Assembly (NCBI RefSeq): GCF_902459465.1
Contig: NC_047062.1
Coordinates: 31,434,001-31,498,000, forward strand
Reading direction: 5' to 3'
Length of the DNA: 64,000 nt
Source: Asterias rubens
Taxonomy: Eukaryota
Made by a program: the position numbers and the translations under genes. Of the stretch, positions 3,648 through 53,743 are shown one piece after another. The notes under the pieces are model-generated. The model made no database searches. It was not told where the DNA came from and was given only the letters and a program-made list of their open reading frames with translations. Each line of letters begins with the position of its first letter. Position 1 is the stretch's first letter.

Positions 3648-3803
3648 TAGACCTTATGCATTGACGTCATCCAGTCGCCATCTTTGAGGTCAAACGGTGA
3701 CGAAACAATCGAAACCATAGATTATAGATTAGCCAATGAACAACCTCTTTTTGACCTCAAGGCTAGGGGCCATACTAAAGTGACGTCATGTGCATGAGGT
3801 CTA
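3648..3803. mobile_element. Small TA-flanked MITE with TGACGTCA in both terminal inverted repeats
   Basis: Left tagaccttatgcattgacgtca, right tgacgtcatgtgcatgaggtcta (imperfect TIR); inner inverted pair ctttgaggtcaaa / tttgacctcaagg. Confidence 0.7.
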
Positions 3804-6782: not shown

Positions 6783-6854
6783 CAAGCAGAGATAAGTAGT
6801 GCACTGACAGACAGCCAAGTAGAGCTCCAACTGTTAGATGCCGCTGACGAGGAG
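6783..6854 (+). CDS. Candidate cassette exon in the RRBP1 last intron
   Basis: cccgtttccctaacag|CAA...GAG|gtataa, 72 nt, phase 0-0, open: QAEISSALTDSQVELQLLDAADEE. Confidence 0.5.
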
Positions 6855-19689: not shown

Positions 19690-19783
19690 ATGACAGTCAA
19701 CGCGCAGAGGTTACGAGAACTGCCGGGGAATGATCGATGTGCTGATTGCCAAGATTGCGACTGCCCACACTGCGGTTTTCCAG
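19690..19783 (+). CDS. Exon 1, ArfGAP N-terminus
   Basis: MTVNAQRLRELPGNDRCADCQDCDCPHCGFP; PGNxxCADC signature; donor CAG|gtaaga, phase 1. Confidence 0.9.
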
Positions 19784-22700
19784 GTAAGAGAGCGTGGTTT
19801 TTAACAAGGTTTTTTCAACTTTCTTAGTACTCCTTGCAGATCAATAGAGGAGCATGGGAATAGGGATGGCCAACTTCGAAATAAAATAATATAGTATCTA
19901 ATTTACCTGATTGATATATCCCTTTTTGTAAAAATGAGTGAAAAAGTGGTTGCGCCATACGGAAAGTTATCCATCTTTTTTATTGATGCGGAAGGAGAAA
20001 AATGAATAATTTAAAAACTGTTTTAAAATGTAAAGGGCCTAAGGTAGCCTAGGTTGGACTCCTCCGTTACTAGGCCTAAGGCTTTTTAAGCCCACTGTTG
20101 GAAAGTTTACTTTTACTTTTAAGCCATGTTTTTAAGTACATTTCTACTGGAGCACTTCAAGGGAACCAAGGCAATGACCAGTGGGTATGAAAGCGATTGA
20201 CTGTTGCCTCTGTGAAGTATCACTATCAGGCCTATTGGGGTTAGCTGATGTAGGCCTAGCGGAAGTCGGACACTTTTTACCTTTGCCACTTTGTACCCTG
20301 GACACTTCTGGTAGAGACAGTTTGAATCCTATATTTTAGCAGCAGGTTCTGCAAAACAATGTTCAAGAAATTACATGTTTTGCGTGTACAGTGGTTTGTG
20401 TAAGTGTAAAACCAAATTTATTATGCTTTATCCATGATGCAAATTTAACTATTCTTTATGACGTTGTTTTTATCAAATCACTTGTTGATTGCAGATGCAA
20501 TTTGGGCATGCGAAGAACTTGGAATCATGGTGTGCGAGGAGTGCATGAGCATGCATCAACTGCTGACCAAATCCAAGTTCAAATCTGTCATATGCCAAGA
20601 CTGGACAGAGGAAAGCTACCAGGTAGGTAAAAAATACCCCCCCCCCCCACCCCCGCAAAGTGGTTAGACTGCATAACTTGCAATCACAAGGTTGTAAAGT
20701 TGTAGGTTCTAATGCCTCAGCTGACGCCGATTTCACAATGACTATGGTAACTTTAGGCGACAACATTTATTCTATTAAAATCATAGACGTTAAACCAATG
20801 TTTAACAGCAGTGTTTATATCCCCCCCCCCCCCACTTTGGGGGGTTTGCCGAGTTCCCTTGATGGGAAGATCATCAAAAAGTAAAAAAAACATAAAAATA
20901 CTCTCTGTTCTCCATGGTAACTTTGGATTACCAGGCTATTGGCAATTACTCAAAATAATTATTAGCATATTTGGTGATGAGTTATGGGGAGAGGTTGATG
21001 GTATAAAACATTGTGAGAAATGGCTCCCTCTGAAGTGCCATAGTTTTCGAGAAAGGAGTAATTTTCCAAGAATTTGATTTCGAGACCTCAGATTAAGAAC
21101 TAGAGGTCTCGAAATCAACCATCTAAACGCACACAACTTCGTTTGACAAGGGTGTTTTTTTTTTTCATGATTATCTCGCAAGTTCGATGACCGATTGAGC
21201 TCAAATTTTCACAGGTTTGTTATTTTTTGCGCATGTTGAGATACACCAACTGTGAAGGCTAGTCTCCACCGCCTTTAGGCTAGTCCTAAGTAATCGTCCT
21301 AACTGGAGATAAGACTAGTCTTAGCTCTTTATCAAAACCACCCCAGTGTACAAATATCTAAACCGCATTGATACAGCAATTGTAAAATGCTGAGAATCTA
21401 GTTAAACATTATTGCTGTTAAGGAAGAACACTCCCCATTATTGGATCCCTGCCTGGTGAGAGACTAGGGGGCATACCTGGGAAGTTTTCCCTTAAATTCT
21501 GGTTTTCAGTATTATAGCCTATTTGTGCATCTGTGTGTAGCCAATCCAAACAGAACATTTCAATGGATTAATCATGTATCCACATAGTATGAAGACCTTT
21601 GAAAACCAATTGTGACTTGGTAGACATGCTACCTTGAACCTCATTCTTTGTAGCTTTAACCCCTGGATGCTGCCTATAGAATAAACAAAACTCCCCTCTC
21701 TTTTTTTCTTTTGGTACTTTCATTGGTTGGCACTTGTCTGATAGGGTAATATTTCAAGCTGTAATTGTTTAGCAGGTTTTGTTGACGATCCTCTCGCAGC
21801 AGTCTGGAGTTCGAGTTCAGTAATACGGGGGACATAAATTGTGAAAGGCAATTGTTAAGAGTCTGTGAATCAAAAATTATGACGGTCGATGCAACAATAT
21901 GTCCCTTTGTGAAGTATTCTGGATCGAGGTCGAGTGCTGGTCTAAAATAAAATGTAAGGGTTGGGCGCAACACTGGTGCGATTGAGCAAACAAATGATTG
22001 CAGATTTGCACACATACACAAGTGGCTTACATGTGGTTCTATTTCTACCTCCATGGTTTAACCATGGTTATGTGGACTACTTTCTTTGAAAAAAAATTGT
22101 TTAGGAAATGCTATAGTTTTAATAATAACTAAAATAATTAGTTTTGATCCAACTAGACTAGTAATTTCAGTGTGTGTTTTTTTACAATTTTTTTGATTTT
22201 TGTCAATGCAGCTCTTATTTATTGGCAAAATTTTCAAGACAAATACAAAAAAAGTCACCTGTGAAAGTTTCATTTGAAAAACAGGTGGCATGGATTTCAT
22301 CAATACATAGTCCTTTTGCTCTGAGTCAACTGGGCCTTTCTAGGTCTTAAAATTCCTTTCTGCTCTGAGTCGATTCGGGTCTTTCTAAGTTAGTCCTTTT
22401 TGCTTCGAGCTGGCAGTTTCTAGGTCTTGTCCTTTTCGCTCCAAGTCGACTGAGTCTTTCTAGGTCCTTAACGTCCCTTTTGCTCTGAGCTGACTAGGTC
22501 TTTCTAAATTAGTCCTTTCTACTCTGAGCTGTGTTTCTTGGTCTTATAGGGGGAGGGAGGGGGGCTAAGTTCTTTCTGCTCTGAGCTGACTGGGTCTTTC
22601 TAGGACCTTAAAGTCCTTTCTGCTCTGAGCTGACTGGGTCTTTCTAGGACCTTAAAGTCCTTTCTGCTCTGAGCTGACTGGGTCTTTCTAGATTGTTTAA

Positions 22701-25700
22701 GTCCTTCCTGCTCTGAGCCGACTGGGTCTTTCTATGTCTTAAAAACCCTATCTGCTCTGAGCCGAATGGGTCTTTCTATGTCTTAAAAATCCTATCTGCT
22801 CTGAGTCGACTGGGCCTTTCTATGTCTTAAAAATCCTATCTGCTCTGAGTCGACTAGGTCTTTCTAGGACCTCATTTCTGCTCTGAGATGACTTGAGGTC
22901 TTTCTAAGTTAGTCCTTTTTGCTCTGAGCCGACTGGGTCTTTCTAGGACCTCCTTTCCGCTCTGCGCTGACTTGAGGTCTTTCTAAGTTAGTCCTTTCTG
23001 CTCTGAGTCGACTGGGTCTTTCTAGGTCCTTAAAGTCCCTTGTGCTCTGAGCCGACTGGGTCTTTCTAGATAATTCCTATCCTCTCTGAGCTGACTGTTT
23101 CTATGTCTTATAAGTGCTTTCGGCTGTGAGGCGACAAGGTCTAGGTCTTGCTCAGAATTTATTACTTTTTGCTTCAGTCAAAAGCTGAACATGTGACTCT
23201 TTTCTCTCGCATTTGACTAGCAATTCAAAACATTCAACTAATTTTGTTCTTCTTTTTCTTGATAGAATATGGCATCAACCAACAACAACGTCTCCAAGGA
23301 GATATATGAGAATTCACTTTCTCCCGCCTTCAAGAAACCTACACGCTGCTTTGATGTGTAAGAAATTTTAATTATATTTATAAACCCCTGAACCACATGT
23401 ATCCTTGTTATTTGATTAGTGGAACAAACGTCACATGTCAACTTTTGTTTTGCCATTACATGTATATATGTGTACTGCCAGAAATTCATATTGTCCAACA
23501 TGTATAATTATAGGATGCTTTGCAACGTTTTTTTCCAAACAAATCCCATCAAGGCAAGTTCGTGTCACAGCAGAAGAGGTTGGTTTCTATATAGAGTCAG
23601 CCACACTGTTGATAATTTTGTTTCTTTTCCAGACTGTAGGGTGTACTAGTTTCTGTTTCTATTTTGTGTTTATTGTGAAAACAATTAAAGATGCTATGTC
23701 AGATTTTTGGCCCCCCCCCCCCCAAAAAAAAAACTTTTACTTTCAATGGTCACGAACCATGACAAAAATTTAAAACGTTTCTTTTAAAACACATAAGAAT
23801 TGGTCACGTGATATATTGTCGGGATCCCGACGAAAACTAATTTTGAGCACTTTATTTCACTGCTACTAATAATTATCGGACTTTTTCGAGCAATGGCTCA
23901 AATGAAAGCTTGTTACTTTCTCTACCCGTGAAGCCCTTTTCAGGCATCTGAAAGCACCCAAGTTTCTGCAACAAGGGTGTTTTTTCTTTCATTATTTTCT
24001 TGCAGCTTTGATGACCAATTTAAAGGCAGTGGACACTACTGGTAATTACTCAAAATAATTATTGGCATAAAACCTTTCTTGGTGACGAGTAATGGGGAGA
24101 GGTTGATGGTATAAAACATTGTGAGAAACAGCTCCCTCTGAAGTGCCATAGTTTTCGAGAAAGAAGTAATTTTCCACGAATTTGATTTCGAGACCTCAGA
24201 TTTAGAACTTGAGGTCTCGAAATCAACCATCTAAACGCACACAACTTCGTGTGACAAGGGTTATTTTTCTTTCATTATTATCTCGCAACTTGGTACCGAT
24301 TGAGCTCAAATTTTCACAGGTTTGTTATTTTATGCATATGTTGAGATACACCAACTGTGAAGGCTAGTCTTTGACAATTACCAATAGTGTCCACTGCCTT
24401 TAACTCAAGTTTACACAGATCTGTCATTTTATGCTTATGTTAGGATACACCAAGTGAGAATACTGGGCCCAATTTCATGGCTTTGCTTACAGCCAAATTC
24501 TGCGCTTACGATCTCGATTCCCGCTTTCGTGCAAGCGCCAAATTGAAGAATGCCTCGTAACGTCATAAATTCAGTCAAATTGTGATCATGCCAGTTTCGT
24601 GTTGATTATTATTATTATTGTTTCTCTTTCTATTAATGACTGCGTTAGATTTAGAAGGTCGAGCCTTTTTATTACAGTTATAATCTCGTTTATGTATTTT
24701 CAGGTTCAAGTCCTGCATGCTCTTGTCAATTTGTCTTTGTTCAACCCTAAGTTATTAAATTTTTAAAGACACTGGACACTATATTTATGCATAAAATAAC
24801 AAACCTGTGAAAATTTGAGCTCCATTTTTTGTCGATGTTGTGAGATAATGATGAAAGAAAAAACACCCTTGTCACACAAAGTTGTGTGCTTTCAGATGCT
24901 TGATTTCGGGACCTCAAATTCTAAACCTGAGGTCTCGAAATCAAATTCGTGGAAAATTGCTTCTTACTCGAAAACTACGCTACTTCAGAGGGATCCGTTT
25001 CTCACAATGTTTTATACTATCAACAGCTCCCCATTACTCATTACCAAGGTTTTATGCTTACAATTATGCTTAGTAATTACCAATAGTGTCCACTGCCTTT
25101 AAAGCAAGTCATAGTACCAGTTAGAGATACTCTGTATGTGTCCATTTGTAGCCTTTAGTTTGTACCGATTACACAAAGAGGAAACATATGTAGAAGTGGA
25201 AAAGAAAAAAACCCAGAGTTTGACCTTTAAGCTTCCTGTTTGTGATATGACAGGGACAAAATTTACCTTTCACAATGGTTGTTATTCTTAATACATTGTA
25301 ATAATAATACTGAGTTGTAATATAGCGCTCACACCGGATATCAAGTGCAGTATTTTTTCTAGCAAGGTATGTGGAGCTACGTTTTTAAATTATAAAACCT
25401 AATTTTTTTTTACGTAGCTCCATGTACAATGTGCTCTGATTTGATTTGATTTGAATTTGTTTGGATCAAAACATGTCAAAAATACGTACACGGCAACGGT
25501 TGAAAAGACGATGAAATAAGATAAAACCAAATTATAACCTAAGATAAAAATACAGCACAAAAATATTCAAGGATAACACAATAAACCCAATTATCTAAAG
25601 CTTATTTCCATTGGTGTCTGTGGTGCAATATCCTGCCAATCAAACCAGGAACACTGGGGCGAACCCCTTTTCTTTACGATAAGTGCACTGGGTTCTAATT

Positions 25701-28700
25701 GTACTACAAAAAACGCATGACTCAGGCATGACAGAAGCGGGAGACCGCCAACATAGGGCTTGATAGCTCAGTTGGTAGCAGCACGTTAAACTGGAGGTTG
25801 TTGGTTCAAATTACGCACTAGTTAATTTGTCTTTGTTTAACTTTACCAAGTCAGTTTCCCTTGTGGTTTATAACTCCAAGTTATTTTATGAAAAAGTGAC
25901 ATCCTTTGTTAAATTTTTAAATGCAAGTTACCTTAAAACCTTACTTATCCAATACGTTTCATACCTTCTCTAACAAAAAATATAAAAAAATACCAGTTGA
26001 TCGTCCAGGTTTTTCAAAAAAGAGGAGGATGAGGGCCTTACTATTTACTATTAACTATTTTTTTCAAGATGGCCGCTTAGTATTTTAAATCAAACAGGCC
26101 ACCAATTTGTTGCATGAGGACCTGTGTTAACACTATTAAACAGGGTCGGATTACACGAAAAAAATTCGCTGGTGTAGGGTTCGCTTATAATGTTTATGAA
26201 ACAGATGGTTACACGTGATAAATAAAATAAAAAAATAAAAATGAATAACAAGTAGTAAAAAAAGGATGCGGCCCCCCAAAAAGATGCGGGCGGGGACGAT
26301 CAACTGGTATTTTTTTTTATTTGGCCTTATTTGTTGAACCAGTGCAGCATTTTACAGCAGTTTCAGTGCTCCAAATCCAGGAGGGACCTCCTCTGTTTGT
26401 AACACCCATTTGTACAAAGTATTTATAGTTTTGTTTATTTACTTGTAATCAATATTCCTGTAATTTTATTATTGTACAAATGGAAATAAAACAGACGAAC
26501 AAATAAGTGACTTTCTTCACATTTGTACAGGAATTTCCGTCGGCAATGGATCATAGCTAAGTACATCCGTCGTGAGTTTTCATCTCCAGACAATCTCCCC
26601 AATTATACCCTTGGTAAAAAATGCGGGTATTTGTGGAAACGTGGACGAGATGGCGGTCTGTTCTTGAGACGTTGGTTTGTATTGGACTCCTCCGGAAAAG
26701 GGAAGCTTCGCTACTACACAGACGCAAATGTAAGTGTACAATATGTATATACTTGGTTTGTGGTAACACCATGTGTGTATCTACTGGCCAGGTAGAGTTT
26801 GTTCTTAGAGAACTGTCTTTCTTAAATTACGATCCTATAAGCTAAAGTAGTAGTCCCAGCCAATTTTCTATACCTTCCGCCCGGGTAATAGTTAAAAAAG
26901 CAGGACAGTTCTTTTAAGAACTGAGAAGTCTCCAGAACATCTGATAAATCTACTCCGCGGTAGTACTAAAATAAAGAAAGACAGTTCTCTAAGAACAAAC
27001 TCTACCTGGCAAGTAGATACACACACATGGTGTTACCGCAAACCAAATATATATTGATACCTCACCATGCAATACCTCAAATCCTAATCCTATCTCGAGT
27101 TAGGACGAGGAACTCGTCCTAACTGAGGAGGGGTTCAACTTATGAAACTTAACTCATCCTAAATCTTAAGATTTAATCCTAAGTTAAAGAGTTTGGTGAA
27201 ATCGACGGCTGATTGCATTAATTGTTGTCATTATTTCATCTTCTCCTTTTTGGTTGATTTACAGGAGCAGAATTTGCGTGGTGAGATATCGCTCTTCCAG
27301 ATGAACATGGTACTGGCCTCGGAGGAGAAGATTGGCCATCCCAATGGTCTGCAACTCATCTTCCCTGAGACAAAGGGTCAAAATACTCGGCTGATTTATC
27401 TCTACGCTGAGCTGGCTAAGGTAACTACCAACATTTCCCCCGACGAGCAGGTTGGAAAACTATGGAAAGCCATTATATGCAAATCCAAAAACAGATGGCT
27501 ACTCTTTGTAACATGAATATGTATTTAAGTAGGATTTGCATGGTGGAAAAACGATGGAAAGAAGACGATCAGAGCATACTGTTTGATACGTCAAGTTGAA
27601 ACCAACGGTTCTTTTCAGTACCACCCCAACTCAAGAGATAGTCATTACATGGTGTTACCGCAAACCTTTCCATATAATATGCATAGCTTATGATTATTCA
27701 TGACTGTTTGCAGGATATGGTTAAATGGTACCAAGCTGTCCGATGCCTGAAGTTTAGAATCAAGAAAGAGACACGTGTAGACATTTCTTTTTCAGAATCT
27801 CATCCCTGGTTTTATGTGAGACTTCTCATTAGCATATTAACAACCTTATGAATATGTATTAAGCTTATGTTTATTCATGACTGTTTGCAGGATATGGTTG
27901 AATGGTACCAAGCTGTACGATGCCTCAAGTTTAGAATCAAGAAAGAGACACGTGTAGAAAAAGATGAAGAAATTGTGAGTATTTTCAGTGTTTCGGCTGT
28001 GGTGGGTTTTACTAAAAGGAGAAGTTTTAGCAATGAACTCAAAAAGTTCTGGGCCCAATTTTATAAAGCTGTTTAGCAGAAAAATACTGCTTAACAATTT
28101 TCTTTGCTAAGCAAAAAATGAGTGGGGCACCAGTCACAACAAAGTAAATTGTATGGAATATTGGCTGTTAAACTGTTTTTGCTAAGCAAGATTTTCCGGT
28201 GCTAAGCAGGTTTTTGTGCTTACAGGCTTTATGCAATTGGGCCCTGGTGTTGGTTGGGTCATTGGGTGTCGGTTCACATCCTGGCCATGACATCTGCTGC
28301 CGATTTCATGAAAGGCTAGGATTAATCCTATCTCGAGTTAGGACAAGTAACTCGTCCTATCTAAGGATGGGTTCAATACGTCCTAACGTCTATGGATTGG
28401 GAACTTAACTCGTCCTTAGCCCTAAGATTACTCCTAAGTTAGGAAGAGTTTGGTGAAGTCAACAGAACACTAATAAAGGGCATTGGTACGTTGTTGTAAA
28501 CGGCGCTGTATATAAGAACTATAGTTATTATTATTATCATCAGTATTATTAATATTATTGTTATTATTGTCTGTAGATTTCCCGTATTTTGCGGTATGAC
28601 ATCTTGAAGGAAGGCTACCTTTTGAAAACAGGGGCAAAGGGCAAGGAAGCCTTTCGAAAACGCTGGATGGTTCTGGACCCTCTGTGTCTCATGTACTTCA

Positions 28701-31700
28701 AAGATCCTCTGGTTAGTTCCAATCACTTATTGCTTCTTCTTCTATTTTTGAGTGGTATCTTCAGTCAATGATGTTTCGGCTGATTTGTCTCCAGAGCCGA
28801 ATTTCAAGACTCTGTCTACATTCTGCGCTTACGAGCATGATTCCCCGCTTACGTGCAAGCGCCGAATTGTTGCCAATGTCACATTGAAACTGAAAACTTC
28901 CTTCCTTGTCTTCTCACGATGCCTAGAGCAAGCTAGTCGAAACGTTGAGACAAATTTAAGAACTCACCTCGCTGTATTGCAGTTAATAACGGTCACTAAA
29001 GTTGCAGTCCCAGCCAATTTTTTATAGCTTCCGCCCACGGAGTAGTTAAAAAGCAGGACAGTTCTTTTAAGAACTGAGAAGTCTCACGAACAGTCCTATA
29101 ATTCTGCTCCGTGGTAGTAGAATATAATATAGCAAGACAGTTCTCTGAAGAACAAACTCTACCTTGCAAGTTGATAGACACCTGGGTTACCGCAAACCAA
29201 ATATATACTGATACCTCACCATGCAATGCCTCAAATCCTATGGGTGCGTTTGATCAGAGCCCCCTGACAAGAGCTAATCGAACGATCACACTCGCCCTCT
29301 TGTGGGGACGTCTGAATGCACCTCGGGATAGCCCCAAGTGACCCGTTCCACAAGCAGGGCACTGGGGGCTGACCCGGGTGAGCCTCTGGAATAACGTCTA
29401 AGCTGTATTGGAACGAACGGGGGCAGACCGGGGTCGACACGGGGAAGCTTATCGAACGTACCCTATATTATTTTTGCTGTTACTTAATGATATGTTTTGC
29501 TTACTCCAGAATACATGTAACTGTCGTTTTTCTTTTATGAGAGTACGGAAATAAATGTATTCTTGAATTGAATTGTTACTATTATTATGATGAAAGTTTG
29601 ACCTTTACTCATTTCTTACTTGATCAGGATGCTAATCCCAAGGGTACCATCCCAATGAAAGCGGGTTACTCTCTCATCATGAATGGACAGCTAGACCCTG
29701 AGAATCGTGGTTATCACTTCTTCCTCAAGACACCCGGCCGCACTTATCATTTCATCGCTGAAAATGACCATGAAAGGAAAGCATGGTTTCAAGCCATACA
29801 CTCTGCCTGCAACAAAGCCAGCGGAGGTAAGATTTCTGAAAACGTCACTTCTGTTGTTTTTCCCCCCCAATTTTTCTTCTTCTTTTGGGCCAATTACAGA
29901 CAACCCTTACTTGTAGGGAAGGTATACGTTTGGTACTTACTCTTAAAAGTAAAATGGTTAGAGGCCTACAGCCGCTTTCGATAGTATAAAGCATTTCGAG
30001 AAACGTTTCACTTTGAAGTAATATATGTGGTTATGTAAAAATATGTTTTTATCCCCTGAAATTAAAATTTGAGAAGCACACACTGCGAAAATTTACCACC
30101 TTTTGAATTGAAATTTTCACAGTTTTGTTTAGTGTTTGCATCTACATTCATGTAGGATTAAAACAATTGAATGGTTCCCAAAAGCCAAAGGTATACATCG
30201 TCTTTAATGTGAATCAAGAATATCGTTTCTGGTGAATAATTGTTTTGGTTTTTTTCCCTTCTTTTTCCTGGACAAAACACAGGTCATCATCATAAACCTT
30301 GTGCATCGCCTTCAGCTCCCAGAAAACCCACCATGCAAATACCAGCTGTGCCGCAGCAAGACAAACCCAAAGCAGCACCAAGTAAATTCCTATCCGATCC
30401 CGCGCTGAAGAGCACCCCCATTGTTGACAAAGTGGAGTCGGTGGATAACGATGAAAGTTTGAAACTCTCCTCACCCTTCAGCGGAGTCCGGCCCAGCACG
30501 AGGCCCCGACCCGCAGAGACTCTGAAGGACTACCATCATCGGCAAGGACCGGGACATCACCCGCACGGCCGCTACCAACCCGGGGCGGAGCTGATCAAAC
30601 AGCCTGCCATTGAGGTGATTGAGGATGACTACCTCGAGTTTATTCCGCCCGATTCAGACTCCGAGGAGAGCTCCGAAGAAGACGAAGAGGAAAACACCGA
30701 ACCTCACTACATTGAAATGGAAGGCGAGAGTGTCGTCATGATGCGGACGGTTGATATGATCGGTATGACAACCAAGCAGCTCTCCACGCATCTAAAGGTT
30801 CCCCCGGGGGCGCTATCGCAATCCAACAGTTGCACCATGTGTGTAAGTTTGGTCTGGAACACCTTGCCGACGCTCCCGAATTCGGAGGGATACGTCGCAG
30901 TGTGTCCCGTTGTGAGTTGCTGCAGCATGCCTAGGAATGTGAAGATGATACAGCCATTCCAGCTGGAGGTACAGCATAGTGCCATTCTGAAGGATGTGAA
31001 AACAAGTGCACCTAAAGTCTGGCATCTCGCTAAAGAACCGGGTAAATCTTAAGGACTGTCAAACTATCAATTTGCTCAAATTCCCTTGGTTTTTTTTTTA
31101 TCTGTATATCAAGTAATACGTGCAGTTCGTCGTCCATTGTGTGATTTATGCTACCTGGTGAATTCAGAGCGAGGTGCTTGCGTAAAGAGCCTTGGGACAA
31201 GGCTAGTCTTTGAGTGTCATGGCTAAACAGTCCAGGGCAATGGACTCATAAGTTCTGTTATTTACAGAATATGGGTTCAAATCCTGGCCTGGTCAGTCGC
31301 GACACTTGTGTCCTTGAGCAAGACACTTTGTCATAATTGCTTCTCTTCACCCAGGAGACCAAATAGGTACCAGCAAGAGCTGGGGGAGTAACCTGCAAAG
31401 ACTGTCAATATAGGGCTACATAGCTTAGTTACACCCGGTTCAGACAAGTGCTCCAGAGTCGCGCCGAACCAAATAAATTAGGAGCGACTCTGGGTCGATT
31501 CAATTAAATTTTGGTTTTAGACAGGCGAACTTAACATAACATTTACATTAGGTGCGGCTCATGACAAGATGGACGTCTGAAACCAAGGTGTTCCTGAGTC
31601 ATTCTGAATGTCTGCAACAGTCGATGTTTCGACTTCTAGCTCCTAACTGTTTCAGACGTCAAACTTTTCATGCACTTTTCATTTCAATAATTTAGTTTGG

Positions 31701-34700
31701 CACGACTGTAGAACACCTGTCTGAAACGGTCCTGCCCTAGTTGTTTTGTCTTTGTTCAACGCAAATGTATTAAGGTTTACCCAGTCAGTTTCCCTTGTGG
31801 TTCAATTTTTATTTTATTTTTACTTTTTTAGGAAAGTTCTCCAAGTGGGAGGCAGTTGAGAGTGGTGGATCCAGCCTCTCTTGCAGGGCTACCGATCGTA
31901 ACGTCATCGTCTCAACAACTAAAACTGGCTGTTTCTGCGTCATGTTCCCTCAGGGGAGTGTCCTTGGGAAGATGGTGAGATGTATGACCTATATGTCCAG
32001 AGAGCAGGAGGAAGACCACTTAGTCGTCAGGGTCTACTTCTTTGATGACAATGGTAGTGATGATGCTCTTCATGTAAGTCAGATAATGCATCTATTATAT
32101 CGTTGCGGTACCCACTGCCAAAACATAGGATTCGAACTGCCTCTAGCTGCCGGGCAATCTAGGTAGTCTAGTTGGTAATTAAAGACACTGCTCTAGAATT
32201 GCAAGGGTCATGGGTTCAAATCCCACCCGAGTAAATATGCCTGTGATATTTTTTCAAAGGACTCGGGAAAGTACTGAGTATACAGTGCTAACACACATCG
32301 GTGTATGGGTAAAAACAAAAACAAACAAAATTAATAATGCAAATTTGTTATGATCTGAGGCTTGTACAGTGTCATGGCCGCGGCGTTAAGAGCACTGGGT
32401 TCAAACTCTGGTGTTTCTGATCAGCAGAGTGTGGGTTCGAGTCCCAGGCGTGACACATGTGCCGTTAAGCAAGACACTTAACCATTGCTTCGTTCTTTAC
32501 ATGGGACATGAAGTCAATGGTCCCTCGTGTTGTGTAAAGTACTAAAAAGAACCCAGTGCACTTATCATAAAGAGAAGGGGTTCCCCGGTGTTCCTGGTTT
32601 AATTGGCTGCATATTGCCACAGCAACTTGTAAACCATTACATGGTGCTAAGTAAAAGGAGTAGGTTTCATAGTTCAAATGTTGCCCCACATACATGTACC
32701 TTGCAGGAAAATACTGTTAAAACGCCTAGAGTGTCACTGAGTGATGGATATGCAGACTTTAAGAAGCCACTTATATTAATATTATTGTGCTAGGAGTGAC
32801 ACAACATTATTTGTGTTCAGTGTCCAGTTTGCCAAAACATTCGATACCCGGCACAAAAAACAAAAACAAATTGATTTTGACTGTGGCATTAATTCAGAAC
32901 ATGTATGTACATGTATTTGTTGTTATTGTTGTCTGTGTATAATAATGACAGGTTCTTTTTCTTTGTATTTCAGGAGATCCAGAGACGTGAGAATTCCTAC
33001 AGCGGGCGTCTTTGTGACATTTCAGGCTCGTTCTTCCTGCCCTACTCTCAAGATGACATTCTCTTGAAGCTGACTGACTTTGAAGGAATGCATATGTACT
33101 TGGGCTCTGATGAACCAATGGTAATCATTCTTTCTCCCAAAAATTGTCCATAAAATTGTCGGAAGGCATTCCAAGATCATCAACTGACATCATCACCACC
33201 GAGAAATCTTGATTGCGCTGTTTTTGGAGTCAGTTACTTTGCTTTGCGCAGCTTAAATGATGACAAGCATCCTATCTTTACACGCAAAATTTGCAGTCTG
33301 TAGACAGACAAATGATCCCCAAGAAATACAAAAGAACTAAAATTATGCGAAGTTAACATCTACTAAAACATACACCCGTTTAAGACAGGTGCGTTTGAGT
33401 GGCGCCAAGCCAAGAGCGACTCTAGGTCGACCCAAATAAATTTTTGTTTCAGACGGGCAAACCATTTACATTAGATCAGCTCTTGACAAGATTGACATTT
33501 GAAACCAAGTCACTCCAGAGTAGTTCCGAACGACTGCAACAGTCGATCTTTCGACTTCTAGCGCGCCCAGTAACTCCTAACTGTTTAAGACTTCGAACTT
33601 TTCATACACTTAATTCGGAATTTGGTTCCGCAAGACTCTGGTGTGCCTGTCTGAAATGGGTGTTATCACCCAGATATCACTTACTGTATCATGCAGATAT
33701 AACCAACTATACTACCAAGTTATCACCAACTATAGTGTATATCACCCAGATATTACCAAATCACCCAGATATAACCAACTATCAGACTATACTACTACCA
33801 AGTTATCACCAACTACAGTGTATGTCACCCAGATATTACCAACCATACCACCTAGTTATCACAAACTATATCACCCAGCACGCAGATATAACCAACTATA
33901 CCACCTACATGTAGTTATCACAAACTATATCACCCAGCACACAGATATAACCAACCATACCACCTAGTTATCACAAACTATATCACCCAGCACGCAGATA
34001 TAACCAACTATACCACCAAGTTATCACAAACTATATCACCCAGCACGCAGATATAACCAACCATACCACCAAGTTATCACAAACTATATCACCCAGCACG
34101 CAGATATAACCAACCATACCACCTAGTTATCACAAACTATATCACCCAGCACGCAGATATAACCAACTATACCACCAAGTTATCACAAACTATATCACCC
34201 AGCACGCAGATATAACCAACCATACCACCTAGTTATCACAAACTATATCACCCAGCACGCAGATATAACCAACCATACCACCTAGTTGTCACCAACTACA
34301 TGTATATCACCCAGTTAATACCAACTCACCCAATTATCTCAAATTATATCATGAAATATATCACCCAGATATCACCAAGTTGTCTTCATACCCTTTATGA
34401 TCCTCTGTATTTTACAGAAAGTGAGTGCCCATGAGTTATGGCACAAGCTGTTAATGTGTTACATGCTGGAGGTTGTGAAGACTGACTCTGTTGGTCAGTG
34501 CAGTATCAGTGTCTGGCACCCAACGGAACAAGAGAAACTCACTCAGATGAATCTACACTACTCAAACGAGGTGAGTAATGAGTAATGTATGTCAGATTGT
34601 AAACTTTGCACGGTGGAGATGCAATCTATGGATAAGTTGCAATAACGCCATCTTGGCATGGTTGGCTTGTGCGTAAAGCGCTCGCCTCACACCAAGGTGA

Positions 34701-37700
34701 CCCCGGTTCGATTCCTGGCCGGGGCCATATGTGAGTTGAGTTGTGAGTAACTCTGCTGTGCCACGAGGGTTTTCCAGACCATCTGGTTTTCCTCCCTCGA
34801 GAAAAATCAAGCACTTTTGATCTTGACTGTGCTCCGTGGTCATAATGGGTTAATGTTGCTGGCTGCGAAAGGCGCCCTTACATGCCTGCTTCTCGAACAC
34901 GTTGAAGCCCCCCCCCCCAAATTATAGTTATGAAATTAACAGGCATATTGCATTTTGGCTTGCAGGCGCGTCAAGCCCCTGCTGCTCGCCATTCTAGCGC
35001 AAAACGCATGGCTGTTTGTTCCAAGAAAAACTTGTAAAAACTTGTAGACCCACAGCTACTTTTATATTGAAAATCCCCTACATTTTCATTTAAAGAAGCA
35101 TGACTAAAAACCAGTGAAAAAAACATATGTTCAAAATGGTGCTTGCATCTTTAAAAAAAAGCTTGAACTTTGTGCTTTGTTCACAATATTATTTGGACAC
35201 AAATTACTGCAAGTGTTTGGCTATGAACATAACAGACTCAAAGCTCGTCATTTTGTTAACTGTAATATTAATAATAATAAAACAGTATTTATATAGCGCA
35301 ATATGAATTGGCATTCCTCAACAGCAAAATGAAAAGCATTACAAGAAAACAAAACCTGTAGGCCTAAAATCCCCAATTAAATCCCAAAACAAATAATTAT
35401 AAAATGAGGCCAGACCAGCTGTTACCTACACGTATATTAAATGAAACTGTAGTTTGTAGAATACATGTAAGTTAGGAAAGAACACTTGGGTTGGACCTGA
35501 ACCCATCCCTTCAGTATCTTAGTCCTCTTTGTAAAACAGTCAAGACAATTATTTGGGGTTGCCCTTACACCAATGTATGTTAGCACTGTATACTCAGTGC
35601 TTTCCCGAGTTCTGTGGAAAATATTAGGCATACAACTCGAGTGGGATTCGAACCCATGACCTTTGCCAATCTAGAGCAGACGTCTTACCAACGGAGATTG
35701 CCTGGTAGCTTCTGCCTCTATTTTTAATGAGAAATCCCTTAACATCAAAGGCCGAATGGCCATTGTTGAGGGCTACAATGAATTGATTTTGGCTGTCGAC
35801 CCAAATCAACTGTCACCAGTCAAGGCACATTGCCATTTACTCCTGGGGCTGGAACAGGGTTACCCCCTTCACAGTCTGTAAGAATGTAGGCATGGGTATC
35901 ATCCACTAGGAGCCACCTACTCCTGGGACTGAAACAGGGTTACCCCCTTCACAGTCTGTAAGGATGTAGGCATGGGTATCATCCACTAGGAGCCACCTAC
36001 TCCTGGGGCTGAAACAGGGTTACCCCCTTCACAGTCCCTAAGGATGTAGGCATGGGTATCATCCACTAGGAGCCTGGCTGGGAGAGCAGAATGCACTACC
36101 ATCCCAAAAATTTATGAAGCAAGTATGGTTAAGTGCCTTTCTCGAGGGCATAAATCTCGTTGAAGGGATTTGAACCCACACTCTAATGCTGCCAAAGCTT
36201 TGGTTCGGTACACTAGGCCACATCACGCCAGAAACGCTTTATTTCACTCCAACGTAAATACTTCTACTTAGGGGCCTTTACCCATTTGTATCCTTACTAC
36301 CCACTGATTCTTTCCCGATGATTGTTTAAGTTTATTAAAGTACAGTCCTCGCTAGTGATTTACAGGAGAAGTAGTTCTGCAGTGACCGCTGGTGGGAAGC
36401 CCGTAAAGAGAAACCGTATTCGATCGTAAGTGACCATGCCAGACTGGGTTGCCAAAAGGTATAATAATACGCCATTGGTCGGAGGAAAAAAAATTCCTTT
36501 CGGTCCTGAAGATTTCAACTAACAACGCAGCTTATGAAAATGCTATCCTTTTTTGGCTGGTCCCGTTTTGGTGAAAGACCATCTGGTTGTATATAGTCTC
36601 TGTGTATTATGCCCGTCTATTAATGCGCTTCATACTGTTTGTTCTTAGAGTTTGTTCTTAGAGAACTGTCTGTCTCTATTCTATTACTGTGGTGTAGATT
36701 TATTGGATGTTGGGGAGACTTCTCAGTTCTGAAAAGAACTGTCCTGGTTTTTAACTACTACCCGGGCAGAAGGTATAGAAAATTGGTTGGGACTACTACT
36801 TTAGCTTATAGGATCGTAATTAACTGTACTACCGCGGAGTCAGTTCTTGGGTTGGTCTCAAGGTTTCGACTAGCTTGCTCTAGTCATTGTCAAGAGACTG
36901 CTATGTTGATTCAGAATCTAGAAATGCACGACAAACACTTAATGCAGAGAACTGCTACTTAAAGTACCTGTGTAGTTACTGTTTGAGTGAATACCAGTGT
37001 GCAGGCTTGGTGAACAGCAAAAGTAACAACATGTGGTGTAGCCTTCAGTCAAGGCCTTCTAGCTCGGAAAGCTTCAGAGAGCCATGTTCCCAAGCGGGAG
37101 GTCCCGCACAGAGTGGCAAAGCCAATGGGGCCTCGTACAACTTGTTTGCGGTTTCTTATTATGTTTTTCTTTATAAATCTTGACTTTTGCTACCCTTTTG
37201 GTTGCAAAAAGCCAAACCAATCGGAACAACATTAACAAATTATGCAACACTTTCTGGGAGAACAACATTCGTTCACCTTTGATTCCTTTTTAAATCGTTT
37301 TGGGGTCTGTTGCATTCGTGCTACCTTTTTGATACTTTGTCTGCACAAATCGTCTCGGATGTGGCTGTTGACGCGCAGTCCTACACATGCATTGCTAAAT
37401 TTTGCACTTCTCGAGCAAGATCTTAAATGCTGGGACATCTTTTTTCCGAATGATGTCAAAGTCCTTCCTTCTCTTATACTATTTATAAATGTTTGCACAG
37501 AAAATCAGCGCTGAGTCTTTAAAGAAGAGATTGATAATCGTAAGTGTGGAATATCGTATCTGTAATTGGTAACATGAAGTAGGGACAGTTATATCCAGTA
37601 CATTTTTAGAACAGCTAATTTATAACCTGTTTTTTATAGCAGAGACAATTTGTGCACACTACCCTTAGCAAACTCTAGTCTCAGGTTTTCAGTGCATTTC

Positions 37701-40003
37701 TGGTGTACTTTTGGTGTATTTGTTGCCTGCACCAAAAGTGCACCGTTACAAAACCCGCCAATAGACACCAAAAAAGCACCAATAAAGCACCAAATTGCTT
37801 TAGTCAATTTACAGCTTGCACCAATAATGCACTGGATATACTTAGTTTAAATCAAGCTAGACCAATAAAGCACCAAATTGTCTTTGTCAATTTACAGCTT
37901 GCACCAATAATGCACCAGTGTCATCACCTTCATGGTGTCATGTAGATACATGTTTTGTTTTTACACATTTTCCAGCTCTGGCCAGAGATAGATTTTTGAT
38001 AATTTTTGTGTGCCGTCTTTACAGGCAATTGGGGATTACATTTGAGCGTCATTAATCATTGGTGGCATTAGTTGTTGCTTCATTGCTTGTTAATGCGGGT
38101 GATCCAACAGCAGTTGCAAACAGCTTCATTAATTAGTCCCATGTTGTTGTTCAACATTTTGTATGTTGTACATACCCCATGTATTGCTGTGTTCATTGTG
38201 TAGACTGTGCAAGTCTCTTGTTTAGCCTAACACTTGTTAGTACCATTGGTTTCCACGTATTTATTATAAGTTATCACACAAGCGCGAGTGGAATACGGAA
38301 AAATATAGTGCTTCTGCATCCCATATCCAACAAGGCTCTTCAAGCAAACTTGACGCGTGACATAGAACACACAATACGCATGGTAGTGATATTAGCCGTG
38401 CAGTATAGGTTTTTATCACCACTCCATTCTGCCAATCTGATTGGAGGATTAGCGCGTACTTGAAGATAAACGTATTTATGACACTGCTTTAAAAGCAAAC
38501 AGCCTGTGCTGCAAAATATGTAGCGCACTAAGCTAATCAATCACAAGAACCAAATCTACCCTCACAGGTACCCATTTACCACTGGGTGGAGAGAAGCTTA
38601 TGGTTAAGTGTCTTGCTCAAGGACATAAGTGTCAAGACTGGGACTTGAACCCACACTCTGCTGAAAAGAAACTCCAGAGCTTGAGTTCGGTTAGGGTTAG
38701 CTTATCCGCTACCCCCTCGGATGAATACATTCATGAGCGATTTTGTGATCGACCTCTCAAATTAATGAATGAATGAATGAGTAAAACCAAGAAAATTGCA
38801 CCATGAGCTGTTTCCCATTTTAATTGTAGAGTATATAATCTTGCTCCATGCGCTGAAGGCCATGTCACACAAGCCAATTTACAGGCAACCAGTTCCAGGC
38901 AATATCTTTTATAAGAACAGCCATTAGTTTCATCTTTAGCTTTCTCACTATTTCCTGGAGAAAGTGAATTACAGCTAAAAGAGTTTTTCATAAACTGCTA
39001 AAGTGTTCCTGGTGCACTCATTGCAGCTGGTAATTGCCTCCAAGTTACCATGTCTGACATGGCCTTTAATAAGTCATAACAGTAACATCCGGTTCAGACA
39101 GGTGCTCCAGAGTCGCACCAAACCAAATTCTGATTTAAGTACATGACAAGTTTGACGTCTGAAACAATAAGGAGCGACTGGACATGCTAGAAGTCGATAG
39201 ATTGACTGTTGCTGTTTCGGAAACGACGCCTTTGTTTCAGATGTCAATCTTATCATGAGCTGAGCCATATAGATGTTTGTTAAGTTTGCCTGTCTGAAAC
39301 CAAAATGTATTTGTGTCGACCTAGAGTAGGCCACACTTAATAAACCTCATCACTTCACCACTCACCAAGGGTGAAAACATTCTGAACCTTTTCTTCATGT
39401 GTGGTTAAACCTTAACTTGTAAATCATCGTTGCTTTATCTCTTTCTCTTTTATCCAGAAAAAGTTTTCAGTGGTAGCGCCGATGCCCTATATGCAAGCCC
39501 CATTGTCTCCGCTTCAAGCTGTTCCGACGAGGTGCCACCAGGCTGTGACGCGTGTTTCATCGGCACCCCTGTCTCCGACCAATGAGAAACCTTGTCTCAT
39601 TGCAAACAGATCACGTGACCACCGCCACGCCCGTTCCATACCATGCCGCAGCACCAAACCCGCAGACGATCTCCCTTACAACAGCTCCCTCGGGCAGAAC
39701 CAACTTCCGTTTCTCGTGAAGCGTGACTTGTTCCTCCTTCTTGATCCAAAGGTGAAAACCGGGAAAGACTGGCGTATGCTCGCCAGTCAACTCGGCATGG
39801 ACATCATGATTAACTCCTTCGATATGCAAATTAACCCCACCATGGAGGTACTGAAGATATTTGAGATCATGGATCGACCAATCAAGGAGTTGGAAGATCA
39901 TCTGCGATACATGGATAGAAACGACGCCGCTGACGTAATCAAAGTACATCTGGAGAAAAACCGGAAGGTAATCAAACCAGTAGTAAACGTGGAAACGAAA
40001 TAA
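19690..40003 (+). CDS. 13-exon gene: ADAP/centaurin-alpha-like pseudo-ArfGAP-PH-PH fused to ZU5-UPA-death domain, 977 aa
   Basis: join(19690-19783,20495-20622,23266-23357,26531-26729,27265-27420,27891-27974,28577-28711,29628-29826,30283-31041,31832-32073,32974-33120,34418-34570,39458-40003) = 2934 nt. All introns GT-AG, all phases match, single open frame ATG to TAA. Confidence 0.85.
20495..20622 (+). CDS. Exon 2, second half of the ArfGAP zinc finger
   Basis: ttgcag|AT GCA...CAG|gtaggt; DAIWACEELGIMVCEECMSMHQLLTKSKFKSVICQDWTEESYQ. Confidence 0.9.
20925..21265. mobile_element. Kolobok-type MITE, end-degraded copy
   Basis: Internal sequence matches 24024-24399, including the atttcgagacctca / gaggtctcgaaat palindrome. 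Confidence 0.8.
22308..23135. repeat. 44-bp minisatellite, about 20 copies (intron 2)
   Basis: Unit ctttctgctctgagctgactgggtctttctaggaccttaaagtc; gctctgag anchors are 44 bp apart from 22578 to 22842; shorter variants at the flanks. Confidence 0.93.
23266..23357 (+). CDS. Exon 3, ArfGAP
   Basis: ttcttgatag|AAT...GT|gtaaga, 92 nt; NMASTNNNVSKEIYENSLSPAFKKPTRCFD aligns with ADAP FMASHGNDAARARFESKVP (recalled). Confidence 0.85.
24024..24399. mobile_element. Full-length Kolobok/T2-type MITE, 376 bp
   Basis: TTAA at 24020-23 and 24400-03; TIR AGGCAGTGGACACTA(C/T)TGGTAATT; internal hairpin. TTAA target plus purine-purine termini fit the Kolobok superfamily. Confidence 0.9.
24775..25098. mobile_element. 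Kolobok-type MITE, opposite orientation
   Basis: Ends aattaccaatagtgtccactgcct|ttaa; interior is the reverse complement of 24024-24399. Confidence 0.8.
26531..26729 (+). CDS. Exon 4, ArfGAP end and PH1 start
   Basis: NFRRQWIIAKYIRREF (ArfGAP FI.AKY motif) then GYLWKRGRDGGLFLRRWFVL (ADAP PH1); donor AAT|gtaagt. Confidence 0.93.
26790..27210. mobile_element. Composite of dispersed non-autonomous repeats
   Basis: The gttcttagagaactgtc / ttctctaagaacaaactctacc family recurs at 28985-29238 and 36640-36850; the ctatctcgagttaggac segment recurs at 28320-28460. Confidence 0.7.
27265..27420 (+). CDS. Exon 5, PH1
   Basis: EQNLRGEISLFQMNMVLASEEKIGHPNGLQLIFPETKGQNTRLIYLYAELAK; KIGHPxGLQ is ADAP-typical; phase 0-0. 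Confidence 0.93.
27714..27815 (+). CDS. Duplicated exon 6a, possible mutually exclusive alternative to 27891-27974
   Basis: Same acceptor ttattcatgactgtttgcag. First 68 nt near-identical to exon 6b, then a novel tail to TAT|gtgaga; 102 nt, phase 0-0. Confidence 0.5.
27891..27974 (+). CDS. Exon 6b, PH1 C-terminal helix
   Basis: DMVEWYQAVRCLKFRIKKETRVEKDEEI|gtgagt, 84 nt; invariant PH-helix Trp present. Confidence 0.9.
28052..28243. mobile_element. PIF/Harbinger-type MITE
   Basis: CTG|GGCCCAAT...ATTGGGCC|CTG: TIR plus 3-bp CWG target duplication. Confidence 0.85.
28577..28711 (+). CDS. Exon 7, PH2 start
   Basis: ISRILRYDILKEGYLLKTGAKGKEAFRKRWMVLDPLCLMYFKDPL, matching ADAP KEGYMEKTGPK...FRKRWF...LMYFKDPL (recalled). 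Confidence 0.95.
29242..29463. mobile_element. GC-rich MITE with 13-bp TIRs
   Basis: tat|GGGTGCGTTTGAT ... ATCGAACGTACCC|tat; 3-bp target duplication. Confidence 0.75.
29628..29826 (+). CDS. Exon 8, PH2 end
   Basis: DANPKGTIP...FFLKTPGRTYHFIAENDHERKAWFQAIHSACNKASG; donor G|gtaaga, phase 1. Confidence 0.93.
30283..31041 (+). CDS. Exon 9, Pro/acidic linker plus ZU5 domain
   Basis: Phase 1-1, 759 nt. Linker has DDYLEF and PHYIEM, followed by LKVPPGAL...VAVCPVVSCC...PFQLEVQHSA, a ZU5 pattern like UNC5 LLVPxGAI...LSPSVTCG...PVILTMPHCA (recalled). Confidence 0.88.
31437..31728. mobile_element. MITE family with CCG(G/T)TTCAGACAG termini
   Basis: ccggttcagaca...cctgtctgaaacgg. Shared core ctccagagtcgc(a/g)ccgaaccaaat recurs at about 2235-2450, 33377-33659 and 39090-39301. 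Confidence 0.75.
31832..32073 (+). CDS. Exon 10, ZU5/UPA junction and UPA start
   Basis: ttttttag|GA AAG...CAT|gtaagt; KWEAVE...GKMVRCMTY...LVVRVYFFDD, like UNC5 WEEV...KRLQLAVF...LRVYCLED (recalled). Confidence 0.88.
32150..32315 (+). mobile_element. tRNA-headed SINE (second family)
   Basis: tagtctagttggta...gggttcaaatcccacccgagt head. Reverse-strand copies at about 9440-9545 and 35545-35710; related heads at 16300-16362 and 25755-25830. Confidence 0.7.
32369..32790 (+). mobile_element. tRNA-derived SINE with CORE-like central domain
   Basis: A/B-box-like gtcatggccg..gttaagagc and gggttcgagtccc. The family segment gtgtccttaagcaagacacttaacc resembles the MIR core gtgaccttgggcaagtcacttaacc (recalled). 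Copies near 31214, 36120, 38570, 51066, 61030 and 61790. Confidence 0.8.
32974..33120 (+). CDS. Exon 11, UPA domain
   Basis: gtatttcag|GAG...ATG|gtaatc, 147 nt; EIQRRENSYSGRLCDISGSFFLPYSQDDILLKLTD. Confidence 0.87.
33665..34380. repeat. 53-bp minisatellite just upstream of exon 12
   Basis: Unit tatcacccagcacgcagatataaccaaccataccacctagttatcacaaacta; anchors 53 bp apart from 33938 to 34256; degenerate flanks. Confidence 0.95.
34418..34570 (+). CDS. Exon 12, UPA C-terminus
   Basis: gtattttacag|AAA...GAG|gtgagt, 153 nt; KVSAHELWHKLLMCYMLEV resembles UNC5 EIPFYHIW...CTFTLER (recalled). Confidence 0.87.
34655..34905 (+). mobile_element. tRNA-derived SINE (third family)
   Basis: ggttggcttgtgcgtaaagcgctcgcctc...ggttcgattcctggcc (B box). 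Reverse-complement copy at about 48985-49200. Confidence 0.85.
35839..36073. repeat. 80-bp tandem repeat, about 3 copies
   Basis: actcctggg units start at 35839, 35919 and 35999, near-identical. Confidence 0.95.
39458..40003 (+). CDS. Exon 13 (terminal), death domain
   Basis: Strong acceptor ctttctcttttatccag, phase 0. LPFLVKRDLFLLLDPKVKTGKDWRMLASQLGMD...NPTMEVLKIFE...MDRNDAADVIK is a UNC5-like death domain (DWRMLA); ends TAA. Confidence 0.92.
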   Translation, partial: KKFSVVAPMPYMQAPLSPLQAVPTRCHQAVTRVSSAPLSPTNEKPCLIANRSRDHRHARSIPCRSTKPADDLPYNSSLGQNQLPFLVKRDLFLLLDPKVKTGKDWRMLASQLGMDIMINSFDMQINPTMEVLKIFEIMDRPIKELEDHLRYMDRNDAADVIKVHLEKNRKVIKPVVNVETK

Positions 40004-53635: not shown

Positions 53636-53743
53636 AGCACCTTTTTAAACACATCGTGCATGATTATGGTGCTTTGTAAATGTACTATTACTATTATGAC
53701 AACTACTAAGGTCCTTGAGTGATTGACTCATAAGAAAACTCAC

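Follow-up and report, generated by a model that had tools for sequence, protein, structure and literature searches.

Gene structure and database identity

The window analysed is a 64,000-nucleotide stretch of the Asterias rubens genome (contig NC_047062.1, positions 31,434,001 to 31,498,000), and coordinates below are positions within it. Its plus strand carries one real, conserved sea-star gene, LOC117292186, encoding a soluble 977-aa protein. The 13 exons span 19690-40003, all 12 introns are GT-AG with phases that match across the model, and an in-frame TAA at 19639-19641 lies upstream of the ATG. An independently rebuilt model reproduces the 13-exon, 977-aa ORF of the initial annotation and is letter-for-letter identical to RefSeq XP_033630033.1 (P0134), isoform X1 of this locus. 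The cytosolic location proposed for the product agrees with its hydropathy: no transmembrane segment is evident by Kyte-Doolittle analysis (highest 19-residue mean, 1.15), nor is a signal peptide evident at the polar N-terminus.

All 13 exons and both UTRs are present, without introns, in a cDNA-like contig of 7.3 kb that comes from a related species (L001). Collinearity with its 5' end sets a minimum 5' UTR in exon 1 of 19525-19689, and collinearity with its positions 3088-7271 sets a minimum 3' UTR of 40004-43837, inside which TRF detects a 105-nt satellite array (40923-42879). The whole CDS aligns to L001 as a single 2,940-nt HSP at 87% identity. L001 comes from a metagenome-type assembly and may represent a retrocopied gene instead of a transcript; in either case a spliced 13-exon mRNA must exist.

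RefSeq holds models from A. rubens, A. amurensis, Acanthaster planci and Patiria miniata. All four are labeled uncharacterized, the A. rubens product being named “uncharacterized protein”. The gene is already modelled, and its description as a candidate new adaptor is too strong. A literature search found no paper describing an ADAP-type head joined to a ZU5/death-domain tail, although databases already list such a protein.

The ADAP-like head

Exons 1-8 encode a head with the same order and spacing as ADAP1 and ADAP2 (centaurin-alpha-1/2): an ArfGAP zinc finger, PH1 and PH2. Residues 8-358 match human ADAP1 along their whole length (E 3.5e-64), and the head is 33-39% identical to vertebrate ADAP1/2 across more than 90% of its extent. 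Pfam assigns ArfGap to residues 5-123 (57 bits, cut-off 28.7) and recognizes two PH domains (105 bits in total, above the curated cut-off). The zinc finger is divided between exon 1 (19690-19783, aa 1-32, with the start codon) and exon 2 (20495-20622, aa 32-74, where Pfam ArfGap matches the exon piece). The middle of the ArfGAP-like domain is encoded by exon 3 (23266-23357, aa 75-105), which is supported by orthologues and by L001 positions 383-477 at 92.6% identity. Exon 4 (26531-26729, aa 105-171) completes this domain and begins PH1 with its KRGRD...FLRRWF signature. The PH1 core follows in exon 5 (27265-27420, aa 172-223) and its C-terminal helix in exon 6 (27891-27974, aa 224-251), the copy used by L001 at 93% identity. 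PH2 starts in exon 7 (28577-28711, aa 252-296), which has a Pfam PH match, carries the KTGAKGKEAFRKRW signature and has the same limits as its counterpart in the distant locus L002. Exon 8 (29628-29826, aa 297-363) encodes the second half.

Both PH signatures align with those of ADAP1, and the basic patterns K.G...FRKRW and KRGRD...R are kept relative to the human protein. The aligned residues include the equivalent of ADAP1 R149, which is required for membrane binding (PMC8888757).

The four zinc-ligand cysteines align with those of human ADAP1 and are all retained, but the arginine finger (CxxCxGxHR) is replaced by Gln53 in Asterias (codon 20557-20559 in exon 2, where the human ADAP1 alignment pairs ...HR... 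with ...HQ...), by Cys in Acanthaster and by Tyr in Patiria. In all four sea stars the zinc-finger loop is also interrupted by an 8-residue Cys-rich insert (QDCDCPHC in A. rubens, 19750-19773 in exon 1), which is a further difference from ADAP1/ADAP2. Because the arginine finger is Gln, Cys or Tyr among sea stars, the GAP is probably catalytically dead. The ADAP-type ArfGAP-PH-PH assignment thus stands for domain order, overall alignment and PH signatures, but not for a working ADAP-type GAP. A further departure is length: ADAPs comprise about 375-380 residues and end just after PH2, whereas here PH2 ends at residue 358, the ORF runs on through exon 9, and the 977-aa protein has another 614 residues.

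The ZU5 and death-domain tail

Exon 9 (30283-31041, aa 363-616) begins with a 142-residue linker that is acidic, proline-rich and disordered. It contains a conserved R-x-x-T-x-P..RP island and two acidic Y-x-E-F/M motifs, and linker motif conservation reaches distant homologues. The same exon encodes a Pfam ZU5 domain (aa 525-600, 30768-30995; 30.6 bits, cut-off 21) that aligns weakly to UNC5B chain 3g5b; an exhaustive HMMER search with this ZU5 returned no UNC5 among its matches, the domain being too divergent. Exon 13 (39458-40003, aa 797-977 and stop) encodes a linker of about 90 residues and a Pfam Death domain (aa 890-958, 39737-39943; 40.9 bits, cut-off 22.6), whose best PDB relatives are UNC5B 3g5b (E 9e-8) and 1wmg.

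Between ZU5 and the second linker, exons 10-12 (31832-32073, 32974-33120 and 34418-34570; aa 616-796) encode a beta-rich region. Residues 617-796 (about 180 aa) give no Pfam UPA or UPA_2 match at E<=10 and no PDB profile match, and AlphaFold2 models of the region reach a pLDDT of only 31 and 38, at which a fold search is meaningless. Look-alikes emerge by protein language model only, as UPA/UNC5 clusters with scores of 0.93-0.96; the best of these has SH3BP4 and ankyrin clusters among its own structural neighbours. By its position this region may be the UPA. A second ZU5 at this place was also considered, and was rejected on testing. In the proposed UNC5-type ZU5-UPA-death domain module, ZU5 and the death domain stand, the latter nearest to UNC5B, whereas a counterpart of the UNC5 UPA is not recognizable by sequence.

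The order from ZU5 to death domain is that of UNC5B, but UNC5 receptors have extracellular Ig and thrombospondin domains and a membrane span, and the sea-star protein has neither, Ig and thrombospondin domains being absent from the Pfam matches of the 977-aa sequence. PIDD1, UNC5CL and the FIIND of NLRP1/CARD8 likewise have ZU5, then a region in the UPA position, then a death-fold domain, but they self-cleave through HF/S or SF/S. Self-cleaving ZU5 proteins need such a motif directly after ZU5 (PMC3210808), and it is missing from the ZU5 end of five sea-star sequences and three distant homologues. The sea-star ZU5 ends in ...QH[S/C][A/G]..., similar to the ...PHCA... of UNC5B and distinct from the self-cleaving motif. 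The tail is presumably not released by PIDD-type self-cleavage. SH3BP4 and MACC1 are also soluble adaptors, in which another type of targeting module precedes a ZU5/death-fold tail (PMC11585957), which makes the claimed novelty of a cytosolic ZU5/death-domain adaptor overstated. Their targeting module is an SH3 domain instead of a dual-PH lipid sensor, and the sea-star protein gave no sequence match to either family.

Isoforms and selective constraint

Intron 12 contains an alternative exon and a candidate for another. The first is a 95-nt cassette (36331-36425) with AG/GTAAGT sites, to which the tail of isoform X2 (P0133, 833 aa) maps at 100%. Its inclusion shifts the frame to a TAG stop at 39474-39476 with loss of the death domain, and Pfam finds no Death domain in X2. 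The other is a conserved, in-frame 39-nt micro-exon candidate (37501-37539), flanked in the window by intact AG and GTAAGT sites; A. amurensis isoform X1 (990 aa) includes it.

Every domain is under purifying selection, with dN/dS of 0.07-0.18 in each folded domain at dS of 0.39-0.66. The value is 0.115 for the UPA-position region and 0.074 for the ArfGAP-like domain. The latter is constrained like the rest of the protein and therefore has some function. Persistence of an ADAP-family ArfGAP under strong constraint without its arginine finger points to a non-catalytic role of the fold.

Proposed role and alternative explanations

The reading that we favour, at slightly better than even odds, is that an ADAP-like lipid-binding head with a dead ArfGAP and a ZU5-(UPA)-death-domain tail form a membrane-recruited scaffold for death-domain partners. 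The ArfGAP part would serve as a structural or binding module. Both PH domains would bring the protein to membranes rich in PI(3,4,5)P3/PI(3,4)P2, or respond to soluble IP4, and at the membrane the tail would serve as the platform on which death-domain partners gather. Annotated isoforms without the death domain may vie with the full-length protein for these sites and so reduce its output. A link from PI3K to apoptosis or immunity is purely conjectural, and a trafficking or scaffold role, which would fit the same anatomy, is equally open.

Several other accounts were weighed against this reading. Automatic annotation, and the initial reading with it, could have fused an ADAP gene (exons 1-8) with an adjacent UNC5CL-like one (exons 9-13); intron 8 is short (29827-30282, 456 nt), and an in-frame Met occurs early in the exon 9 linker. 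This is very improbable, given that L001 carries both halves in one 976-aa ORF spanning the junction, that all RefSeq isoforms of the four species join them, and that exon 8 ends in a strong phase-1 GTAAGA donor right after the PH2 helix, read-through of which meets no in-frame stop for 52 codons. Exon-7-like, exon-8-like and ZU5 exons are also collinear on one strand in a distant marine locus (L002/L003), whose PH2 scores 62-65 bits against the sea-star protein versus 30-36 bits against vertebrate ADAP. Full-length models in four sea stars of two orders (Forcipulatida and Valvatida) and the dN/dS of 0.07-0.18 in every folded domain also support the exon 8/9 junction. In the rebuilt gene model intron 8 is indeed the phase-1 GT-AG intron said to connect PH2 to the linker/ZU5 exon. 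Echinoderm genomes contain many genes with reshuffled death domains, and a functionless chimera confined to this lineage, drifting neutrally or decaying, might be imagined. It is the least credible account of all and is refuted by the selection data: dN/dS is low throughout the domains (dS about 0.4-0.65). In addition, ORFs are intact in five taxa, and a linker motif is shared with distant homologues. A working ADAP-type Arf6 GAP with an extra tail would accord with the high Pfam ArfGap score, the retained zinc ligands and the strong constraint on the domain, but is improbable when the arginine-finger position is neither Arg nor conserved and the zinc-finger loop carries the Cys-rich insert in all four species.

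The remaining alternatives concern its use. The more serious, although still unlikely, gives the same protein a scaffolding task in trafficking or in the membrane skeleton, not in cell death or immunity. Its head would mark vesicles or membranes rich in PIP3, in the manner of ADAP1 with the kinesin KIF13B, and its tail would engage proteins of the cytoskeleton or of endocytosis, on the model of ankyrins, SH3BP4 and MACC1. Solved ADAP1 entries include the centaurin-alpha-1 entry 3fm8, which we take to be the KIF13B FHA complex, and the SH3BP4 and ankyrin neighbours of the best look-alike cluster point the same way. SH3BP4 and MACC1, themselves cytosolic ZU5/death-domain proteins, act in clathrin-mediated endocytosis (PMC11585957), and a role in organelle transport, together with PI3P lipids and dynactin, is reported for ankyrin-B (PMC4274267). 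However, the death domain is nearest by sequence to UNC5B and not to ankyrin, and no SH3 domain, ANK repeats or evidence of spectrin binding was found in the sea-star protein. More doubtful is a soluble “dependence sensor”, in which a head occupied by PIP3 or IP4 would hold the tail closed and silent at the membrane until a fall in PI3K activity, or cleavage of the acidic linker, opened it to nucleate a death-domain complex leading to cell death or an immune response, with the death-domain-less form as a built-in antagonist. Such a protein, if real, would correspond to the UNC5 netrin dependence receptor but would sit in the cytosol and be read out by lipids.

Implications

The value of the finding is limited, as a RefSeq model exists, death-domain shuffling is common in echinoderms and the functional statements are all inferred. 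Death-fold signalling modules are normally preceded by a receptor (UNC5), a repeat scaffold (ankyrin, PIDD) or an NLR sensor. In the sea-star protein a similar tail follows a head of the phosphoinositide/inositol-phosphate-sensing type whose enzyme site is probably disabled. Should that head still respond to PI3K products, the membrane-recruited scaffold would link lipid second messengers directly to death-domain assembly, and sea-star oocytes and embryos, which are easily injected and imaged, are suited to tests of that link.

A Single Gene Joins an ADAP-like Head to a ZU5 and Death Domain Tail

Four independent lines of evidence establish that the ADAP half and the ZU5 half form one joined gene on the + strand (19690-40003). 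The window is AT-rich, animal-like DNA with numerous small exons and no runs of N, and translation of the stop-free + strand pieces between 19.6 and 40.0 kb gives the Pfam order ArfGap, PH, PH, ZU5, Death. When the gene model was rebuilt from splice sites alone by choosing the chain with the strongest sites, 13 exons joined into an open 977-aa frame, with GT-AG borders in 12 of 12 introns and matching phases throughout. The in-phase chain put forward in the initial annotation was recovered independently in this way, including the phase-1 GT-AG intron between the PH2 and ZU5 exons (intron 8, 29827-30282). An in-frame TAA (19639-19641) lies upstream of the ATG at 19690. The rebuilt model is letter-for-letter identical to isoform X1 of Asterias rubens LOC117292186, which makes the window A. 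rubens DNA, and ArfGap, both PH domains, ZU5, and Death of this exact protein all exceed their curated Pfam cut-offs, in agreement with the domains first assigned.

Cluster look-ups that followed an exhaustive HMMER search seeded with exon 9 led to RefSeq models in four sea stars: A. rubens (X1, 977 aa; X2, 833 aa), Asterias amurensis (990, 977, and 833 aa), Acanthaster planci LOC110987868 (993 and 855 aa), and Patiria miniata LOC119741456 (998 aa). These species represent the orders Forcipulatida and Valvatida, and in all four the product is named “uncharacterized protein.”

An ADAP gene followed by a separate ZU5/death domain gene would place a gene boundary near the end of exon 8, where a GTAAGA donor stands immediately past the PH2 helix and read-through into the intron is stop-free for 52 codons. 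This two-gene reading is rejected because three sources of sequence link the two halves. The exon 8-exon 9 join is present in every RefSeq isoform of the four species. Contig L001 from a related species (7,317 bp, JACSEG010000472.1, in the metagenome-type assembly GCA_014845345.1) aligns to the window like a spliced cDNA, with all block ends coinciding with modelled exon borders and a single HSP covering the whole coding sequence at 87% identity. Its UTRs are also collinear with the window (∼160 nt of 5′ UTR and ∼4.2 kb of 3′ UTR, up to 43837). A mature mRNA joining exons 1-13 must have existed for L001 to arise, either as a transcript-derived contig or as a retrocopy. Finally, two contigs of a much more distant organism (L002 and L003, assembly GCA_013332995.1/SAMN14350114) contain pieces resembling exon 7, exon 8, and the ZU5 exon, which share one strand, lie within 2.6 kb, and keep the same exon limits; their PH2 is clearly nearer the sea-star protein (62-65 bits) than vertebrate ADAP1/2 (30-36 bits).

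A pseudogene is likewise rejected, given purifying selection on all folded domains and the intact ORF of L001 (976 aa). Comparison of the window with L001, the fourth line of evidence for the joined gene, gives dN/dS values of 0.074 for the ArfGAP-like domain, 0.082 for PH1, 0.074 for PH2, and 0.075 for ZU5, rising to 0.115 in the UPA position (aa 617-796) and 0.18 in the death domain. The linkers give 0.22-0.31. Corresponding dS values range from 0.39 to 0.66 for folded domains and from 0.30 to 0.54 for linkers. The encoded protein is soluble, has multiple domains, and is under purifying selection.

The Head Resembles ADAP1 but Lacks the Arginine Finger

The ADAP-type head of the initial annotation holds up well: the solved human protein (ADAP1, 3feh/3lju) aligns over residues 8-358 with an E value of 3.5e-64. 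Identity to vertebrate ADAP1/2 is 33-39% across >90% of the head, and the best 120 matches, among the matches listed, are all vertebrate. The arginine finger position (...HR... in ADAP1) is occupied by Gln53 in A. rubens; Acanthaster has Cys there and Patiria Tyr. In all four sea stars the zinc-finger loop is interrupted by a Cys-rich stretch of 8 residues, QDCDCP[H/E]C. Both PH1 and PH2 retain basic signatures, including the counterpart of ADAP1 Arg149, mutation of which eliminates membrane binding (PMC8888757). Retention of these signatures together with replacement of the arginine finger suggests that the head probably senses lipids or IP4 and has a catalytically dead GAP. Constraint on the ArfGAP-like domain matches that on the rest of the protein, so the domain must serve some other, non-GAP role. 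Whereas ADAP1/2 end after PH2, the sea-star protein continues; with the wrong length and no arginine finger, it falls outside the ADAP family.

Within the head, 97 nt are directly duplicated (27685-27781 and 27862-27958; 96% identity, 177 nt apart), so that the acceptor of intron 5 is copied along with 68 nt from the start of exon 6. The downstream copy is the one used by L001 and the RefSeq models. The upstream copy has an intact acceptor (27714) and could yield an in-frame 102-nt decoy or alternative exon, with a GTGAGA donor after 27815.

The Tail Carries ZU5 and Death Domains

The ZU5-UPA-death domain module proposed initially stands in part. ZU5 is clear and Death is found, both by Pfam, and the UPA label is without a Pfam or PDB profile match. 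In profile searches, the best solved relative of the C-terminal half is UNC5B (3g5b; E 9e-8), mainly via the death domain, with ZU5 aligning weakly to that chain as well, followed by the death domains of NF-κB p105 and MyD88; 1wmg scores 1.6e-6 against the C-terminal-half profile. The sea-star ZU5 ends in ...QHSA... and that of the distant homologues (P0002-P0004) in ...QHC[A/G]..., resembling ...PHCA... of UNC5B. PIDD/FIIND-type self-cleavage uses an HF/S or SF/S motif (PMC3210808), and it is not expected here because a motif scan of the sea stars and distant homologues found neither at the ZU5 end.

Conservation extends through the ∼180 residues that separate ZU5 from the death domain linker, and a beta-rich structure is predicted for them. 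Pfam gave no UPA match at E ≤ 10 for aa 600-800 of four orthologues, nor did a profile of aa 612-800 find a UPA-containing chain among PDB sequences. AlphaFold2 models of the C-terminal half (4-sequence alignment, pLDDT 31) and of ZU5 plus the UPA position (7 sequences, pLDDT 38) were too poor for use, and Foldseek against the PDB with the latter returned noise alone. A second ZU5 in this position was rejected, as hhalign against the ZU5 alignment matched shared boundary residues alone. The sole pointer to UPA is a lead: UPA/UNC5 clusters are protein-language-model look-alikes of the region. Of the three ZU5-UPA-DD features, the sea-star protein has two, and it lies outside UNC5, whose ectodomain and membrane span are both absent.

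Several short motifs mark the otherwise fast-evolving linker. A conserved island at 30480-30530 (aa ∼429-445) reads SPF[SA]G[VI]RPST[KR]PRP in sea stars and ER[SL]PT[VL]PPRP in the distant homologues; from its core, R-x-x-T-x-P..RP, we infer only a resemblance to a basophilic-kinase/14-3-3 mode-1 or SH3-ligand site. It is preceded by a semi-conserved acidic V/L-D-x-D stretch (VDND, VDED, DVDD, ELDG; 30440-30455, aa ∼415-421), speculatively a candidate caspase-type cleavage site parting head from tail, as in UNC5. Just before ZU5 are two acidic Y-x-E-[F/M/L] motifs (30627-30641 and 30705-30719; aa 479-482 and 505-508), with a similar motif in the distant homologues. Their tyrosines are mostly kept across sea stars, the first being Ser in the L001 species, and the YxxM form is limited to Asterias-type sequences. 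The second may be no more than the opening strand of ZU5.

Isoforms, Repeats, and Neighboring Sequence

A 95-nt cassette exon on the + strand (36331-36425, AG/GTAAGT) accounts for A. rubens isoform X2. Its inclusion shifts the frame to a TAG six codons into exon 13, and the death domain is lost; equivalent models exist in A. amurensis and Acanthaster. A. amurensis uses a 39-nt micro-exon whose counterpart on the + strand of the window (37501-37539) is intact.

Intron 11 contains a 53-nt tandem repeat (33826-34298; 8.8 copies, 93% matches) that ends ∼120 nt upstream of exon 12. The presumed 3′ UTR includes a 105-nt satellite array (40923-42879; ∼19 copies, 82-86% matches), across which L001 is ∼1 kb shorter. 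A short interspersed repeat in introns of this gene (31214-31398 and 38570-38633) recurs in the L001 3′ UTR (6121-6302) at ∼78% identity. Elsewhere, an uninterrupted 1,808-aa minus-strand ORF (53740-59166), K/E/S/P-rich, of low complexity, and with no Pfam match, is a neighboring opposite-strand gene; GC there reaches 0.50 and AT skew is strong. The GC-rich tandem repeat at 1381-2081 is stop-free in several frames of both strands; it is probably no gene but a minisatellite.

Distribution and Possible Roles

The exhaustive search with exon 9 returned five clusters: one from sea stars, three of marine single-exon fragments, and one weak low-complexity match, the latter four being its only matches outside sea stars. 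Word-indexed homologue searches gave no matches with the C-half alignment and sea stars only with Acanthaster aa 380-993. A metagenome scan with the ZU5 alignment found the same contigs again, plus a weak 1.2-kb contig (L010, JAAGOD010028603.1) with a weak ZU5 relative at 974-1189 (33% identity).

Full-text literature searches found no paper placing ZU5 and ArfGAP, Arf-GAP, or centaurin in one protein. The combination was initially presented as unreported, and this stands for the literature, although RefSeq models already exist. The domain architecture is accordingly undescribed, yet it is assembled from known parts and already in RefSeq. Echinoderms are a phylum known for shuffled death domain genes.

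The initially proposed role in death or immunity and one in trafficking or the membrane skeleton would suit this anatomy equally well, with ankyrin, SH3BP4/MACC1, and ADAP1-kinesin as trafficking precedents. In the mechanism favored here, the PH pair would recruit the protein to membranes bearing PI3K products, where the ZU5-(UPA)-death domain tail would scaffold death domain partners, and competition would come from the isoform that lacks the death domain.
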